A stretch of DNA of 64,000 nt from Podarcis pityusensis. Taxonomy: Eukaryota. Of this stretch, positions 7,718 to 57,623 are shown piece by piece. The DNA lies in assembly GCA_964106645.2 (NCBI GenBank), contig OZ067053.1; one strand, 5' to 3'. Numbering within the stretch: position 1 is the first letter of the stretch; the number at the start of each line of letters is the position of its first letter. The notes beneath the pieces are model-generated. The model worked only from the letters and a program-made list of their open reading frames with translations. It was not told the DNA's origin and did not search any database. The translations under genes were made by a program, and so were the position numbers.

Positions 7718-7730
7718 CCCCTCCCCTCTA
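7718..7730 (-). other. Polypurine tract, overlapping the gag-pol TAG stop
   Basis: Minus strand reads TAGAGGGGAGGGG directly before the 3' LTR TG. Confidence 0.9.
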
Positions 7731-10700
7731 AGTTCCAGTCCTGCCCGGGAGGTCGCATTCATAGTCCTCAAGGTATGCCGGCGGCCTACGTGTGCGTTGT
7801 GGCCTGGGGTGTTCCCTGGTCCGGGCTCCGGGTTCTGGCTCGTGTTCCAAGGATGCTGGCTGTGATGCGGCTGTTTGGTCTGGTGCAACCGGCTCGCTCA
7901 GTCGTGGTTCTGGTTCCGGTGTCCTTTCGGCCTCACGGGTCCTCTCTGTATTTACTGATTCTGCCTCTCCTGCTGGCCCCTCCTGCTCTATGGGCCTCAC
8001 TGCCCCGCTGTTCCCTTGGGACTCCTCTGACCTGTCCTCCTCCTGGTTTTCTCCCGGGAATCGTCGCCGTATCTGGTCGCAGTGGCGGCGCCAGCATTGC
8101 CCCCCATCCGTTAGCACCTCGTACGACACGGGGCCAGTGACCCTGGTGATTGTGGCGGGTACCCATGCTGGGCCTGCCCCAAAATTCTTTGCGTACACTG
8201 GGTCCTGGGCCTCGAAGGTCCGGGGGTTCCTGCCTTCCCCCACCACTACCTCATCCTGAGCTCTATCGGGGTGAAGGCGGTCCAATCTGATTGCAAGGCG
8301 CCGACCCATTAGTAGTTCAGCGGGGCTCCGGCCAGTCGTTGAGCTGGGGGTGCTGTGCTGTGCTAGAAGGAATGTGGCAAGGCGGTACTCCCAGTCCCCT
8401 TGCGTCATGCGGCGAAGGGTGTCCTTGGTGGTCCGCACCATGCGTTCTGCTTGGCCATTGGTGGCAGGGTGGAACGGCGCCGAACGGATGTGGCGGATGG
8501 CGTTCTGCGCTGTGAAGGTTTGGAATTCTCCTGACGTAAATGCAGTCCCGTTGTCTGAGACGAGAGTGTCAGGGAGCCCGTGGGTTGCAAACAGCCTGCG
8601 TAGTACCCGGATGGCTGCGGACGTGGAAGTGGACGGTACCAGTGCGACTTCCAGCCATTTGGTGTAGGAGTCCACCACTATGAAGAATGTTTTCCCCTGA
8701 AAGGGGCCAGCGAAATCCACATGCAGGCGTGACCATGGTGCTCGGGCGGACTCCCAGGACTGGACTGGGGCCCTTGGGGGATCTGGGCGGGATTCTTGGC
8801 AGGCCTGGCAGTGTTTGACCCAGGCCTCTATCTCTCCATCGATCCCCGGCCACCACACATAACTCCTGGCAAGGGCCTTCATTCTTACTACCCCTGGATG
8901 TGTCTCGTGTAGGGCTGTGAGGACCCTTTTGCAGAGGGGCTGGGGAACAACGACTCTGCTTCCCCATAACAGGCACCCCTTGTGGGCCGACAGTTCATGT
9001 TTGCGGGTTGTGTAGCCGGCGAATTCTGGCCCGGGGCTGCTGCTGGGCCATCCCCTCCACACCCAGTCCAGGACCCGGGAGATGACCCTATCTTTCTTGG
9101 AATGGTGTGCAACTTCTTGTGCCTGAATGGGGCGGTCGGGAAGCAGCTCCAGGCTCATAACCTCTTGTGCAGGTGCTGGGTCAGGGCCTGTTTCCGGTAG
9201 TGGTAGCCTGCTGAGGGCGTCCGCATGGCCCATCGCCTTCCCAGGTCGGTGAATCAGTGCATACTGGTAGCTGGCAAGGAAAATTGACCACCTGAGGACG
9301 CGAGGAGACAGCACTTGGGGGGTCTGCTTTTCGGGGGCAAACAAGCCAAGCAACGGCTTGTGGTCAGTCACCACGGTGAAGGGCCGCCCGTACAAGAAAT
9401 CATGGAATTTTTTTACTCCCTTTACGATTGCCAGACCCTCCTTGTCGATTTGCGAGTAGTTCCGCTCGGTTGTGTTGAGTGTCTGGGAAAAGTACGCCAC
9501 CGGTACCTCTCTTCCATCCGGGAGTTGGTGCCCCAGGACAGCTCCAATGCCATAGGGTGAGGCGTCGCATGCTAGCACCACCGGCAGCCTCTCGTCGAAG
9601 TGTGCCAAGACCGAGTTTGAGACAAGCAAGTCCTTGACTGCCTGGAATGCGGCCTCCTGGCGCTGGCCCCACACCCAAGGGGCCCGCTTGTCCAGGAGTC
9701 TGTGTAGGGGCTCCGCTACCGCCGCCTTGTGGGGAAGGAAGGAATGGTAAAAGTTCAATAGTCCCAAGAAGGCCTGAAGTTCAGTCTTGCTCTTGGGCGC
9801 TGGGGCATCACAAATGGCCCGTACCTTGTCCCCAGTCGGGTGGACCCCTTCTGCGTCCACCATAAATCCCAGAAAGTCCACCTGAGGCACTCCTAGTAGA
9901 CATTTTTCCCGCTTCACCTTGAGACCCGCCGTCTGGAAACGGTGCAGAACGGTGCGGAGGCGGTCCTCAAACTCCTCTGGTGTGGGGCCGGCAATCAACA
10001 CATCATCGAAGAAGGGGGTGACGCCAGGAATCCCTTTAAGGAGAGAGTCCATTATATTCTGGAATATGCCTGGTGCCACGCTGACACCGAATTGCAGCCG
10101 CTTTACCCTGAACGCTCCTCTGTGCGTCACAATCGTCTGTGCCTCTGCTGTGGCCTCATCTACTGGCAGCTGTTGATATGCTTGGGCCAAGTCCAGCTTG
10201 CCAAAAATTTTCGACCCAGCCAGGGTGGCAAGGACATGGCTGACCACTGGCACTGGGTATGCGTGGGCCGTGAGGGCCTTGTTTATGGTACATTTGTAGT
10301 CTGCGCAGATGCGGACCGAACCATTAGGCTTGACGGGTGTGACGATTGGGGTTTCCCAGGGAGCATTAGGCACCGGCTCCAGCACTCCTTGCTCTACGAG
10401 TCGGTCCAATTCCTCGTCTATACGGGGTTTCAAGGCGAACGGGACCCGGCGGGCCTTGAGCCTGACCGGTCGTACTGCGGGGTCAAGCTGTAGCGCAATG
10501 GGGGGGCCCGTATACTGTCCCAATTTCCCATCGAAAACCCCTGGAAATTCCTTGCATATGGCGTCCACGTCCACTTGTAAGCTCGTGTGGTTCACCCCGG
10601 TGACAGCTAGCCCCAGTGGTCCAAACCATGCCAATCCCAGTAAGCTAATGTAGGGGCCCTTGACCACAAGCAAGTCCAGTTGCCGCGTCCGCCCTCGGTA

Positions 10701-11804
10701 TTGCACCCTGAAGGTCCCCACCCCCATTGTGGGGACCTTACGTTTCTGGAAGTCCCGGAGGGTGAATGGGGCCGGCCTGAGTTTGGGACCCCCAGTGGGA
10801 CACAGTTTCCTTAAGGTCCTTGCCGAGATTATGGATAGAGTTGAACCCGTGTCAAGCTCCATGCGGCATGGGGCCCCCTCTATCTGTACCTCTACATAAA
10901 TTTTCTCTACGTTGGGGTGGGGCAACTGGTATACCTGGAAGTCCGTGAGCTCCGTCGAGTTGCCTTGGTGCGTTGGGCCCCGGGACCTGGGGCTCTTGGA
11001 TTGGTCATCTGATGCCTGGTGTCGGGTGGGCCAAGCCCGACACACCCGGGCGATGTGTCCCGATTTTCTGCACTGTCTGCACTCTGCGTTGCGGAAACGG
11101 CAGGTCCTCCTCTCGTGACTCTCCCCGCAGCTTGCGCAGTTCCCTCCTTCTCGTCGAGGCAGCTGTGGTCTGTGCGCTGCTTGAGTGCGCTGCTGTACTC
11201 GGTGCACCTCCTCCCTGTCGGATCCTGAGTCGTCGGTGAGGTCTTCATGGTGGACCCTCGGTTGGGATGGCAGGCTCGGCCGTGCCTCTTGGGTCGACCT
11301 CTCGGCAGCTTCTGTTGCCAGGGCCTCCTCCAGAGCGACCTGGAACGTTAGGTCCTTCTTAGCGTAGAGGCGTCGTTGCAGCTTCTCATCCTTCAGGCCA
11401 CCGACGAGGCGGTCACGAAGCATGTTCTCCAGCTCTGAGAAGTTGCAGAACCGGGCGGCTTGGCGGAGAGAGGTCACAAACCCAGTTATGGTTTCCCCAG
11501 GGGCTTGCCGCTTTGCGTAGAAGGCATTTCGACGAGCCACCACTGAGGGCTGCGGCGAAAAGTGCCCCTTCAGCTGTTCCATTATTGTTTTGTATGGAAC
11601 AGTAGCGACGTCTTCAGGCGCAAGGAGAGCCCGGGCGATTTCAAACGTCTCCTCTCCGCAGACGCTGAAGAATATCGCCCTCTTCTTGGCGTCTTCTTCG
11701 TCGGTGACCCCTTTGGCTTCTAGGAGGAAGGTGAAACGGGAGGCGTACGCTTCCCAGTCTCCAGATGCTGGGTTGAATGGCGAGAAGCTGCTGTTGGCTG
11801 CCAT
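7728..11804 (-). CDS. Gag-Pol polyprotein, 1358 aa (Gag, protease, RT, RNase H, integrase)
   Basis: Zinc knuckles CASCGESHERRTC and CRQCRKSGHIARVC; protease ELDTGS; RT KLDLAQAYQQ, LQFGV, FFDD; RNase H LACDASPYGIGAVL; integrase H-ETH...CQAC, HVDFAGPF, SDNG, AERMVR. Domain order PR-RT-RH-IN is that of Gypsy. Confidence 0.97.
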   Translation of the reverse strand: MAANSSFSPFNPASGDWEAYASRFTFLLEAKGVTDEEDAKKRAIFFSVCGEETFEIARALLAPEDVATVPYKTIMEQLKGHFSPQPSVVARRNAFYAKRQAPGETITGFVTSLRQAARFCNFSELENMLRDRLVGGLKDEKLQRRLYAKKDLTFQVALEEALATEAAERSTQEARPSLPSQPRVHHEDLTDDSGSDREEVHRVQQRTQAAHRPQLPRREGGNCASCGESHERRTCRFRNAECRQCRKSGHIARVCRAWPTRHQASDDQSKSPRSRGPTHQGNSTELTDFQVYQLPHPNVEKIYVEVQIEGAPCRMELDTGSTLSIISARTLRKLCPTGGPKLRPAPFTLRDFQKRKVPTMGVGTFRVQYRGRTRQLDLLVVKGPYISLLGLAWFGPLGLAVTGVNHTSLQVDVDAICKEFPGVFDGKLGQYTGPPIALQLDPAVRPVRLKARRVPFALKPRIDEELDRLVEQGVLEPVPNAPWETPIVTPVKPNGSVRICADYKCTINKALTAHAYPVPVVSHVLATLAGSKIFGKLDLAQAYQQLPVDEATAEAQTIVTHRGAFRVKRLQFGVSVAPGIFQNIMDSLLKGIPGVTPFFDDVLIAGPTPEEFEDRLRTVLHRFQTAGLKVKREKCLLGVPQVDFLGFMVDAEGVHPTGDKVRAICDAPAPKSKTELQAFLGLLNFYHSFLPHKAAVAEPLHRLLDKRAPWVWGQRQEAAFQAVKDLLVSNSVLAHFDERLPVVLACDASPYGIGAVLGHQLPDGREVPVAYFSQTLNTTERNYSQIDKEGLAIVKGVKKFHDFLYGRPFTVVTDHKPLLGLFAPEKQTPQVLSPRVLRWSIFLASYQYALIHRPGKAMGHADALSRLPLPETGPDPAPAQEVMSLELLPDRPIQAQEVAHHSKKDRVISRVLDWVWRGWPSSSPGPEFAGYTTRKHELSAHKGCLLWGSRVVVPQPLCKRVLTALHETHPGVVRMKALARSYVWWPGIDGEIEAWVKHCQACQESRPDPPRAPVQSWESARAPWSRLHVDFAGPFQGKTFFIVVDSYTKWLEVALVPSTSTSAAIRVLRRLFATHGLPDTLVSDNGTAFTSGEFQTFTAQNAIRHIRSAPFHPATNGQAERMVRTTKDTLRRMTQGDWEYRLATFLLAQHSTPSSTTGRSPAELLMGRRLAIRLDRLHPDRAQDEVVVGEGRNPRTFEAQDPVYAKNFGAGPAWVPATITRVTGPVSYEVLTDGGQCWRRHCDQIRRRFPGENQEEDRSEESQGNSGAVRPIEQEGPAGEAESVNTERTREAERTPEPEPRLSEPVAPDQTAASQPASLEHEPEPGARTREHPRPQRTRRPPAYLEDYECDLPGRTGT

Positions 11805-30259: not shown

Positions 30260-30448
30260 NNNNNNNNNNNNNNNNNNNNNNNNNNNNNNNNNNNNNNNNN
30301 NNNNNNNNNNNNNNNNNNNNNNNNNNNNNNNNNNNNNNNNNNNNNNNNNNNNNNNNNNNNNNNNNNNNNNNNNNNNNNNNNNNNNNNNNNNNNNNNNNNN
30401 NNNNNNNNNNNNNNNNNNNNNNNNNNNNNNNNNNNNNNNNNNNNNNNN
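30260..30448. other. Assembly gap (189 N)
   Basis: Run of N. Confidence 1.
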
Positions 30449-52371: not shown

Positions 52372-53090
52372 ACTTAGGGGTTCCACAGAGAGGGCTGTCT
52401 TCCAGGCCACTGCTTGTTAGCAGCTACCTCTGTGACTCATGATGGTCCAGTAAAATGAGACTGCTTTGGGTAAAAGCATATCGGACAAATAGAAGGATTT
52501 CTTCACACGGCACATCTTTTGACATGAGAAACTCACTGCTGCAAGCTGTGGATATGGTGGATGGCTTAGGTGTTTTTGAAAAGACCTGGTATATCCCAAA
52601 GTTCATCAGCCCAGGGATGGTCAGGGATGAATGAATTCAGCAACATCGAGAGGGCCACACATTCCTCACCATTGGATTAAATGGAACCTTAGACCAAAGT
52701 CTATTGAGGTTAGCATTACTTATTCAATAGGGACCACTCTGCCTCTGGAAATTCCCTAGGAGGGCAGGAGAGGGAGGAGCAGGCTTTCTCTGCTTTTTGA
52801 CCCCAGCAGCCAATAAGCAGAGTTGTACTGCCACTATACATGGAAGTTCCATGTAACTGTCATGGGTCTGTGCATAGTCAACATGGTGCATTCTGGGTAT
52901 TCTTGGAACCATCAGCCCCAGGCAGTTATCAGGGATTATGAGAGTTGGGGTCCAACACACTGGTTTACCCCATCTTTTCTGTTTAAAGTCATTAACACAT
53001 CTTGTGGCAGTGAACTGCATATGTTTCTTACAAATTCTGTGAAATAGTAGGCATAATAAAGTGAAAGTAAGCCATTAAAAGAAGAGGCAC

Positions 53091-53348
53091 CTTTCTGAAT
53101 TCAGCAAAATAGAGGTTGCCCTCAGTGAACTCTTTCCCCAGGGAAATGTTGAGAGTCACTTCCGCATTGTCATAGTGGGAACTCAAATCGAGGTCTTCCT
53201 GCAAAGCATATTTCACCACAAAGGCCTTATGACTGTCCAAACAGCCTCCCCCACAGTCTGGGTAAAGCAAAGCTGTGAGGGGTTGTAGGTATTTTTCACG
53301 CAGAGAGGTGATGAAAGTTTCATCCAACCCAAGTTCGTTTAAGAGAAC
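53091..53348 (-). CDS. OGFOD2: OGFOD2 exon 6
   Basis: gcag|GTT...AAG|gtgcct. Encodes VLLNELGLDE...LYPDCGGGCLDSHKAFVVKY...SHYDNAEVTLN, containing the HxD iron-binding motif. Confidence 0.97.
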
Positions 53349-53979
53349 CTGCAGTGGGTCATATATGAACATGCAAAAGAAAGAGTTAAAGGGGAACCAA
53401 ACAGAATGCAAAATAAATATTTTTTGCAGAAGGGTCAGGGCATTTTGCAGTGGTCAGGTTCTTGCGATGGCTGAAAACTGTTCTCCATTTTCTAACATGC
53501 TACATTCTCTCAATTTGGATAGTAAAGATTTGCTTCTTTGCCCAGTAAGGACTTTAAGATCAACAAATCACAGAATTGGAAGGAACCACAAGGGTCATCT
53601 AGTCCAACCCTCTGCAATGCAGAAATATTTTGCCCAGCATGGGGTTTGAACCCACAACCCTAAGATCAAGGGTCTCATGCTCTACTGACTTAACTATCCC
53701 AGCAGAGGAATGGAACCTGGTTCCATTGTCCTTTTAAATGTGTTGTGGGAGGGGGGATTATTGGCCTGTTATTGTTTTTGTTCTTATTTTTATTATGTAT
53801 TTTGTGTCTTTTATATTGCAGTTTTATCTTGTGAACCGCCCTGAGATCTATGGATGAAGAGCAGTATACAATTTTAATAAATAATAATATAATAGTAATG
53901 ATATATAAATTAATTATAATACGGGGTGAGTCTAGGTAAGCATAATAATAACCTTAGCACTCACCTAGCACTTTGTTTG

Positions 53980-56012: not shown

Positions 56013-56503
56013 CTAGCATTGGAAGAGGAGAGGAGGGTGGGAAAAAATTATTTTCACACACACACAAGATACCTCCATTTAACCTGTTTTTAATGTGCTT
56101 CAACTTTAATTTTGTTCTTGGACAGAGTGAATAATGGCGGCTGGCGCAGAATTAACCATGAGGAGGAGGAGTGGGGTTGCAAAGGTGTACACCTCTCTTT
56201 ACATGACACTCTACCCCGCCCAGGACAAATTCCCAAAAGGGGGTGCAAGTTCCATGCAGGGCTGAGTAAGATTAGCACTGTGTGCCTCGTAGAAAAATTG
56301 CTTTTGGACAATGCTTGTGACAACTCTTTTTCTTATTTGTGCTGCTAAAAGTACAGGCAGAGTCTTGTCCACTCCCCAGTGAGGAAGCCCCTTCCCAGAG
56401 GAATGGTGTCAGCTGAAAATGGGCTACTACTCAGCAACTATTTCTAATGAAAATAAAAAAAATCCTTCCAGTAGCACCTTTAAGACCAACTAAGTTAGTT
56501 CTT

Positions 56504-56543
56504 GGTATGAGCTTTCGTGTGCAAGCACACTTCTTCAGATACC
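56504..56543 (-). ncRNA. Minimal type I hammerhead ribozyme motif (sense to OGFOD2 pre-mRNA)
   Basis: Minus strand reads GGTAT-CTGAAGA-A-GTGTG-CTTG-CACAC-GAAA-GC-TC^ATACC. Confidence 0.8.
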
Positions 56544-56663
56544 TGAAGAAGTGTGCTTGCACACGAAAGCTCATACCAAGAACTAACTTAGTTGGTCTTA
56601 AAGGTGCTACTGGAAGGATTTTTTTTATTTTGATTATGGCAGACCAACACGGCTACCTATCTA

Positions 56664-56703
56664 GGTATCTGAAGAAGTGTGCTTGCACACGAAAGCTCAT
56701 ACC
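56664..56703 (+). ncRNA. Minimal type I hammerhead ribozyme motif; predicted cut after 56698
   Basis: Stem I GGTAT/ATACC, core CUGAAGA(+A), stem II GTGTG/CACAC, GAAA, palindromic AGCU and cleavage triplet CUC. Confidence 0.82.
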
Positions 56704-56789
56704 AAGAACTAACTTAGTTGGTCTTAAAGGTGCTACTGGAAGGATTTTTTTAATTTTGATTATGGCAGACCAACACGGCTACCTATCTA

Positions 56790-56829
56790 GGTATCTGAAG
56801 AAGTGTGCTTGCACACGAAAGCTCATACC
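56790..56829 (+). ncRNA. Minimal type I hammerhead ribozyme motif; predicted cut after 56824
   Basis: Identical 40-mer, 126 nt downstream of the previous one. Confidence 0.82.
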
Positions 56830-56915
56830 AAGAACTAACTTAGTTGGTCTTAAAGGTGCTACTGGAAGGATTTTTTTTATTTTGATTATGGCAGACCAAC
56901 ACGGCTACCTATCTA

Positions 56916-56955
56916 GGTATCTGAAGAAGTGTGCTTGCACACGAAAGCTCATACC
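56916..56955 (+). ncRNA. Minimal type I hammerhead ribozyme motif; predicted cut after 56950
   Basis: Identical 40-mer, another 126 nt downstream. Confidence 0.82.
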
Positions 56956-57512
56956 AAGAACTAACTTAGTTGGTCTTAAAGGTGCTACTGGAAGGATTTT
57001 TTTTATTTTGATTATGGCAGACCAACACGGCTACCTATCTGTATTTCTAATGAACAATTCTGAATTCTGAATCTGCACTTTTTAAATTTATTTTTTGCTG
57101 AACTGTTTTGGTTTTGCTTTGCTGATACATTAGCCTTTGTTGATATTATTAAATGGAGGGAAAGTGTGATTTTTTTCTCAATGTTTTGTTGTTGTTTTAA
57201 GCTGCATTGAGAATAAACCTTGCTACTGAAAAAGCAGCATACAAATATTAAATCAAAATTTACCCCTCTCCATTAACTGTGCCCCATTAACCACAGTATA
57301 TCAGCACCAACATTAGCCCGTGTGTTAAGAGTATGCAGGTCCCATTTTATCCAGTGATAGCTAAGCATCTTCAAGTCTGCACCAACTTGCAGGAGTATAG
57401 ACTCCGACCCTCCTGCTAAACTGTTGTACGGAAATGTCACCAGAGTAGAGGCCATTCCTAAACTATCTCTAGCTATGGACTTGCATGCAAATCGAAGAAA
57501 CAAGTTCTTTAC

Positions 57513-57623
57513 CTGTAAAGTATACAGTTGAGGATGCTTTGGCTTGTATTTCAGGGAAATTATTGCTTTCCTTTCCCTAGAGCGGCACTCTAATTCCTTT
57601 CTCCTCTGGACTTCTTTTTCAAC
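57513..57623 (-). CDS. OGFOD2: OGFOD2 exon 3
   Basis: ctag|GTT...CAG|gtaaag. Encodes VEKEVQRRKELECRSRERKAIISLKYKPKHPQLYTLQ. Confidence 0.93.

Follow-up and report, generated by a model that had tools for sequence, protein, structure and literature searches.

A tandem hammerhead-bearing insertion in a lizard genome with the anatomy of Penelope-like element integration

Positions 56452–57041 of the 64,000-nucleotide stretch of Podarcis pityusensis DNA analysed here (the window) are most probably one recent insertion of a non-coding mini-element that was made by the enzymes of a Penelope-like element (PLE). The preliminary description of this DNA had seen in it a tandem hammerhead, retrozyme-like Penelope derivative, and of that view the non-coding nature, the PLE-type anatomy and the templated unit junctions stand; the element does not, however, found a new class, but is an ordinary member of a described one, whose representatives are already known in vertebrates including reptiles.

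Structure of the insertion

The features of the insertion are collected in Table 1. Its main part is an array, the only one reported by Tandem Repeats Finder, with a period of 126, 4.0 copies, 99% matches and no indels. Comparison of the units in register shows that a T>A change at 56752, in unit 2, is the sole difference among them and that the fourth unit ends 6 nt early, at 57040, and all of the internal unit-unit junctions of the array read CTATCT-AG-GTATCTG. The four head-to-tail units of the preliminary description, with their one substitution and shortened last member, are thus borne out, and the target-site duplication, which had been put at 11–13 bp, is 13 bp long and identical on the two sides. 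The final two bases of the left duplication can be assigned equally well to the element's inverted arm (below). A blastn search with the 126-nt unit found no further copies in the window.

Table 1. Features of the insertion and its flanking duplications (window coordinates).
Feature	Positions	Strand	Basis and remarks
Left target-site duplication TATTTCTAATGAA, AT-rich	56439–56451		Identical 13-mer at 57042–57054
Inverted 5'-truncated unit copy lacking the tail, 91 nt	56452–56542	−	Inverted repeat I4 and reverse-complement comparison
Complete minimal hammerhead motif	56504–56543	−	Descriptor match 56538–56509; predicted cut between 56509 and 56508
Four direct 126-nt units (3.95 copies)	56543–57040	+	Tandem Repeats Finder, in-register comparison, direct-repeat family D1
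Incomplete hammerhead of unit 1	56543–56577	+	Core and helix II; helix I 5' strand replaced by the inversion junction
Complete minimal hammerhead motif	56664–56703	+	Descriptor scan; predicted cut after 56698
Complete minimal hammerhead motif	56790–56829	+	Descriptor scan; predicted cut after 56824
Complete minimal hammerhead motif	56916–56955	+	Descriptor scan; predicted cut after 56950
Predicted stem-loop of the unit body (last unit)	56969–57026	+	Fold of 56917–57043; 3' strand AGACCAAC is AC-rich and lies within the tail
Tail of 31–34 nt, right end only, about +84 to +115/117 from A9	57010–57041	+	Family 3' ends and left-arm end
Right target-site duplication TATTTCTAATGAA	57042–57054		Second copy of the left 13-mer

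For 56450–57041 the preliminary description mentions direct units only, but the stretch to the left of these is an inverted copy: it forms part of an inverted repeat whose 94-nt arms (56445–56538 and 56543–56636) are 99% complementary and are separated by a 4-nt spacer, ATAC. In minus-strand orientation this inverted arm extends from GTAT-CTGAAGA to ...TTTTATT, or from about −10 to +81/83 when counted from the hammerhead core base A9, so named below; it stops at the equivalent of 57007–57009 and lacks the last ~31 nt of the unit. It directly adjoins unit 1, which is without helix I because the inversion junction lies there, and it is this same junction that gives the minus-strand copy its complete hammerhead motif.

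In the last unit A9 is position 56927, the predicted cut falls at +24, the left arm ends at the equivalent of +81/83 and the right end of the insertion is at +114/117. The right end carries 31–34 nt that are missing from the left arm. Other copies of the family (below) keep matching through CTATCTGTA, and G57041 therefore belongs to the element and not to the target; the AG in the three internal junctions is by this comparison particular to the array or its source. In terms of a Poseidon-like plan the unit corresponds to about −10 to +117, the ORF and the remaining terminal repeat being absent.

Minimal hammerhead motifs

Three of the units have the complete 40-nt motif GGTAT-CTGAAGA-A-GTGTG-CTTG-CACAC-GAAA-GC-TC/ATACC. 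The hammerhead core positions (C3-U4-G5-A6-N7-G8-A9, G12-A13-A14, A15.1/U16.1 and H17) are present as CTGAAGA...GAAA-GC-TC in all units, with C as H17. Helix I is GGUAU/AUACC (5 bp) and helix II is GUGUG/CACAC (5 bp, closed by G10.1-C11.1), an extra unpaired A stands between A9 and 10.1, and the palindromic 15.2–16.2 stretch is AGCU with no loop 3. Folding predictions place helices I and II in the minimum-free-energy structure, both for the motif alone (−11.6 kcal/mol) and for the 126-nt monomer. All the features listed for PLE minimal hammerheads (PMC4209133), namely the base between 9 and 10.1, G10.1-C11.1, the palindromic 15.2–16.2 and a short helix I, are found here, and by these sequence features the motif belongs to the minimal type I PLE hammerheads. 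The assignment to the type I hammerhead of Penelope-like terminal repeats made in the preliminary description is therefore upheld in every published feature, as is its account of three complete 40-mers at the junctions and a first unit that has the core but lacks the 5' strand of stem I.

The Infernal models that had been proposed as a check did not recognize the motif: no Rfam hammerhead family matched at E ≤ 1 over 3.5 kb, nor at E ≤ 10 over 221 nt. Rfam hammerhead models presuppose a helix III, and we therefore wrote a descriptor of our own for the minimal motif as published, which asks in this order for a helix I (≥4 bp), CUGANGA with 0–1 additional base, a G-C-closed helix II (≥4 bp), GAAA, a palindromic segment of 0–6 nt and U-H. 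This descriptor matches three times on the plus strand and once on the minus strand of the window, always inside the insertion, the rest of the 64 kb and 200 random sequences of equal length and composition being free of matches; it misses the incomplete hammerhead of unit 1. An exact scan of metagenome contigs with a 35-nt motif gave no match. The Rfam matches to microRNA precursors or leaders all stay below threshold (MIR1222, for example, scores 67 bits where 90 are required) and arise from the perfect 94-nt hairpin.

Coding capacity, host gene and transcription

No PLE ORF (telomerase-like reverse transcriptase (RT) plus GIY-YIG nuclease) was found in the element or anywhere in the window; the element is therefore non-autonomous, and we file it as PLE-mobilised and not as a PLE. 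A 207-aa ORF on the plus strand (56447–57070) spans the inverted arm and all four units; it is open throughout because 126 nt are 42 codons and one frame has no stop, and this frame, which starts at A9, is of a kind expected by chance in about one frame in 8. A word-based search with the 207-aa sequence found no relatives, and its Pfam matches are repeat artefacts, as no stretch passes alone. The idea that the frame is a relic of a parent ORF was likewise rejected: when 1.84 billion representatives were searched by phmmer with the translated unit (42 aa), two matches appeared, and each is a short repeat-motif match to an unrelated repeat protein, the one an amastin array and the other a protein whose only own matches, to SUKH-4 and to a decapeptide repeat, are sub-threshold.

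The host gene lies on the minus strand, since both a Pfam OGFOD2-like match (53028–53411) and a consensus donor, CAG|GTAAAG at 57513/57512, are found on that strand, and the four direct units are consequently antisense to it. Contigs from RNA runs start to match at this donor, and transcriptome contigs of two other species (1,436 and 1,212 nt) also begin matching at 57512; 57512–57600 and beyond is probably an OGFOD2 exon that is conserved across species. The only hammerhead in sense orientation to OGFOD2 is that of the inverted arm, and in OGFOD2 pre-mRNA each of the four units would offer this arm a partner for a perfect duplex of ~94 bp (56445–56636).

Each plus-strand unit contains a run of eight T, which would stop Pol III. 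A Pol III promoter was considered and rejected, as the A/B boxes are no better than those in 20% of shuffled sequences. We found no evident promoter at the array and nothing that points to a plus-strand transcript from this locus, so that the plus-strand RNA envisaged in the preliminary description has no known source here, and the array, antisense to OGFOD2 and without an evident promoter, is for these reasons probably idle.

Elsewhere in the window an uninterrupted 1,358-aa ORF on the minus strand (7728–11804) has protease-like, reverse transcriptase, RNase H, integrase zinc-finger and integrase core domains, and looks like an intact Ty3/gypsy-type LTR retroelement pol. A run of 189 N at 30260–30448 is an assembly gap or a masked stretch.

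A large family of dispersed copies

Contigs of four public runs were placed on 56900–57600, that is, on one unit and the right flank. At likenesses of at least 90%, 4,524 contigs of a DNA run with the same species label and 6,829 of a DNA run from another species lie on the unit, and the summed word depth is about 2–3.6 million on the unit versus 24 on the single-copy flank in the same-species run, a depth ratio that is not to be read as a copy number; the contigs from the other species do not extend over the flank. These data point to a family tens of thousands of copies strong. DNA or unclassified runs that hold at least one quarter of the stretch's sampled words bear eight species labels. 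The presumption that the family is small or obscure, which one might take from the preliminary description, has to be given up, as contig placement makes it huge and mostly dispersed and its class has been described in reptiles.

The 5' loose ends of the family copies gather at 56915–56917 in all four runs, the 3' loose ends gather at 57010/57013 (best supported) and at 57043, and the flanks vary between copies. It follows from these shared ends and heterogeneous flanks that most copies are dispersed and have one fixed 5' end and two 3' ends, as at the locus studied here. Two runs presumed to be RNA have 276 and 504 contigs on the unit, again with flanks that vary between contigs; host transcripts that carry copies would explain these differing flanks, and such transcripts may be what the contigs represent.

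The family is young, since 1,076 contigs with the same species label are at least 99% like the unit. Its family-wide variable positions are 56958, 56962, 56977, 56978, 56997 and 57012, and none of the six variants at 10% or more of the contig depth lies within 56917–56955, a weak hint as regards compensatory changes in the helices. The base of the window's copy is the rarer one at 56978 and 57012 in each of the four runs and at 56997 in three, which places this copy in a young sub-family. The age of the insertion itself is addressed by a 1,908-nt contig from an independent sample with the same species label. Its match to the flank begins at exactly 57042 and lasts until the examined stretch ends, with 7 mismatches and 1 gap in 559 bases (about 1.4%), and on the left the contig continues with at least 334 bases that do not fit the array; to judge from where its match begins, this contig is probably an empty allele without the insertion.

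Comparison with known elements

Non-LTR retrozymes are short non-coding tandem units with type I hammerheads (Cervera & de la Peña 2020, PMC7229834) that are now read as non-autonomous PLE derivatives, coming from PLE terminal regions (Li, Clavereau & Pollet 2026, bioRxiv 10.64898/2026.07.22.740005). Li et al. found them in four of five reptiles sampled, with consensus units of 51–972 bp and a reptile mean of 176 bp, and recognize a retrozyme by at least two consecutive units and a hammerhead below −5 kcal/mol; the insertion, with three motifs at −11.6 kcal/mol, counts as one by this rule. It resembles non-LTR retrozymes in having non-coding tandem units that each bear a type I hammerhead, longer target duplications and a low G+C content, and in having no LTR, primer-binding site or polypurine tract. 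It differs from them in several ways: the 126-nt lizard unit is shorter than the 170–400 nt RNAs that have been shown experimentally, its hammerhead is of the minimal PLE type whereas the canonical type I has loop contacts, its predicted RNA is not strongly self-paired, and its family consists mostly of dispersed monomers.

The best characterized relative in architecture is the Poseidon element of Anolis carolinensis, Poseidon_Ac or PAc (Frangieh et al. 2024, PMC11167929), whose protein cuts and extends both DNA strands with a preference for AT-rich sites, and whose reverse transcription begins internally, in an AC-rich stem-loop. In PAc the A of the AUG is the core base A9, the hammerhead cut lies at about +26–30, and the tail is the stretch between two RT start sites, about +85 to +119 from the AUG; in the lizard unit, counted from A9, the corresponding values are +24 for the predicted cut and +84/87 to +114/117 for the tail. 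As in PAc, the hammerhead core stands just before +1, an AC-rich stem-loop and two ends that resemble RT starts are present, the insertion site is AT-rich, the arrangement is tandem and the frame from A9 is open through the unit. Unlike PAc, the insertion has no ORF, RT or GIY-YIG domain and has AAG in place of the ATG, and a by-eye comparison found no sequence likeness outside the hammerhead core, so that only the architecture is common to the two.

Like the minimal hammerheads of PLE terminal repeats (PMC4209133), the motif combines CUGANGA, an extra base, G10.1-C11.1, GAAA and a palindromic 15.2–16.2 with the absence of loop 3; its helix II has 5 bp as against 7–8 bp in the schistosome minimal hammerheads that were described first. 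PLE minimal hammerheads are thought to act as dimers (PMC4209133; Lünse et al. 2016, as cited in PMC6765202). The family appears to have inherited this PLE motif, in which a helix III would need two copies. In being a very abundant, short and dispersed retroposon with a hammerhead it also resembles the schistosome SINE-like elements Sm-alpha and Sj-alpha, but these have a Pol III promoter, whereas the A/B boxes here are at the level of shuffled sequence and each unit has its T8 run.

Proposed course of the insertion and origin of the multimer

PLE insertions are recognized by partial tandem copies, by a 5'-truncated copy in inverse orientation immediately upstream and by a tail of 30–40 bp that is often one-ended (Craig et al., PMC8557442), and all three hallmarks are present at this locus. 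We propose the following course. The enzymes of a PLE (telomerase-like RT and GIY-YIG nuclease) would have inserted a non-coding mini-element made up of the hammerhead motif and the next ~117 nt, in which PLE reverse transcription would start. An AT-rich site would have been cut on both strands with a 13-bp stagger, and cDNA synthesis would then have been primed from both DNA ends at neighbouring internal start sites in the RNA, at about +83 for the left end and at +114/117 for the right. The right-hand cDNA would have copied almost four units from a template that already held the unit junction and was presumably multimeric, the left-hand cDNA would have copied 91 nt, and the two would have been joined head to head near CTGAAGA. 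In this scheme the PLE enzymes, the priming from both ends and the multimeric template are all deduced, the both-end priming by analogy with one in vitro study of another species.

How the multimer arose turns on the three internal junctions. Three independent template jumps with untemplated bases would be unlikely to give identical AG junctions, and the junction must therefore have been copied from a template (a multimeric transcript or a circle) or multiplied after insertion. One form of the former is that a plus-strand multimer cuts itself, the 126-nt monomer circularises and a PLE RT copies it by rolling circle, giving four units in one step, a model that has been proposed for PLEs and retrozymes (PMC4209133, PMC7229834). 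The identical junctions agree with it, and so does the coincidence, within the unit, of the 3' end at 57043 (equivalent to 56917) with the 5' end at 56915–56917, which is expected after one turn of a circle. We nevertheless regard it as unlikely. Copies that end at 57010/57013 are not accompanied by a cluster of 5' ends at 57011–57014 among the best-supported ends listed; their 5' ends stay at 56915–56917, and tail-less copies that keep this 5' end fit a linear RNA with a fixed 5' end. Self-pairing of the 126-nt monomer is nothing out of the ordinary (z = +1.2), since 184 of 200 shuffled sequences reach a fold that is as good or better, and for an RNA with two motifs the best predicted structure is a rod with the helix II strands paired in trans, to which the double-hammerhead fold is inferior by ~14.6 kcal/mol. 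Published PLE minimal hammerheads show poor cleavage also in dimeric form, a single dimer out of nine from Xenopus was seen to cleave, and the Anolis hammerhead needs protein, is dispensable for insertion in vitro and has no RNA-seq read ending at its cut site (PMC11167929). That the family as a whole multiplies through a hammerhead-processed circle of about 124–126 nt we consider rather improbable.

Local growth of the array would equally yield identical junctions and leave the duplications untouched: a monomer or dimer would have been inserted and then amplified by unequal crossing-over or replication slippage, as Li et al. 2026 (bioRxiv 10.64898/2026.07.22.740005) propose for retrozyme arrays. 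The units are, however, 99–100% identical, little time was available, given that an independent sample with a flank only ~1.4% divergent seemingly lacks the insertion, and multi-copy head-to-tail insertions are a normal primary outcome for PLEs (PMC8557442), so that such growth is unlikely at this locus. PLE tandem and inverted structures are also known to trouble assemblies (PMC8557442), and the count of four units is the assembly's, the independent data being short-read contigs only; even so, the intact duplications, the private substitution in unit 2, the one-ended tail and the known form of the class make a coherent structure, and it is very improbable that the unit number or the inverted arm is an artefact of assembling a repeat-rich spot. 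Insertion in one event by PLE enzymes is the reading that we retain.

Implications

What deserves an answer is whether circles are ever formed in vivo through minimal PLE hammerheads. Were the circle real, no smaller retrozyme circle would be known and none would have been shown before in an amniote, and PLE reverse transcription would have in the mini-element a minimal template of natural origin. Independently of this, the locus is a clean and dated example of PLE-type integration, with both ends, the duplications, a one-ended tail and a templated multimer, and its boundaries agree with the two in vitro RT start sites of the Anolis element, which lends the mechanism independent genomic support from another lineage. 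The unit also shows how far a PLE can be pared down, to a hammerhead and about 117 nt, while still reaching a very high copy number.
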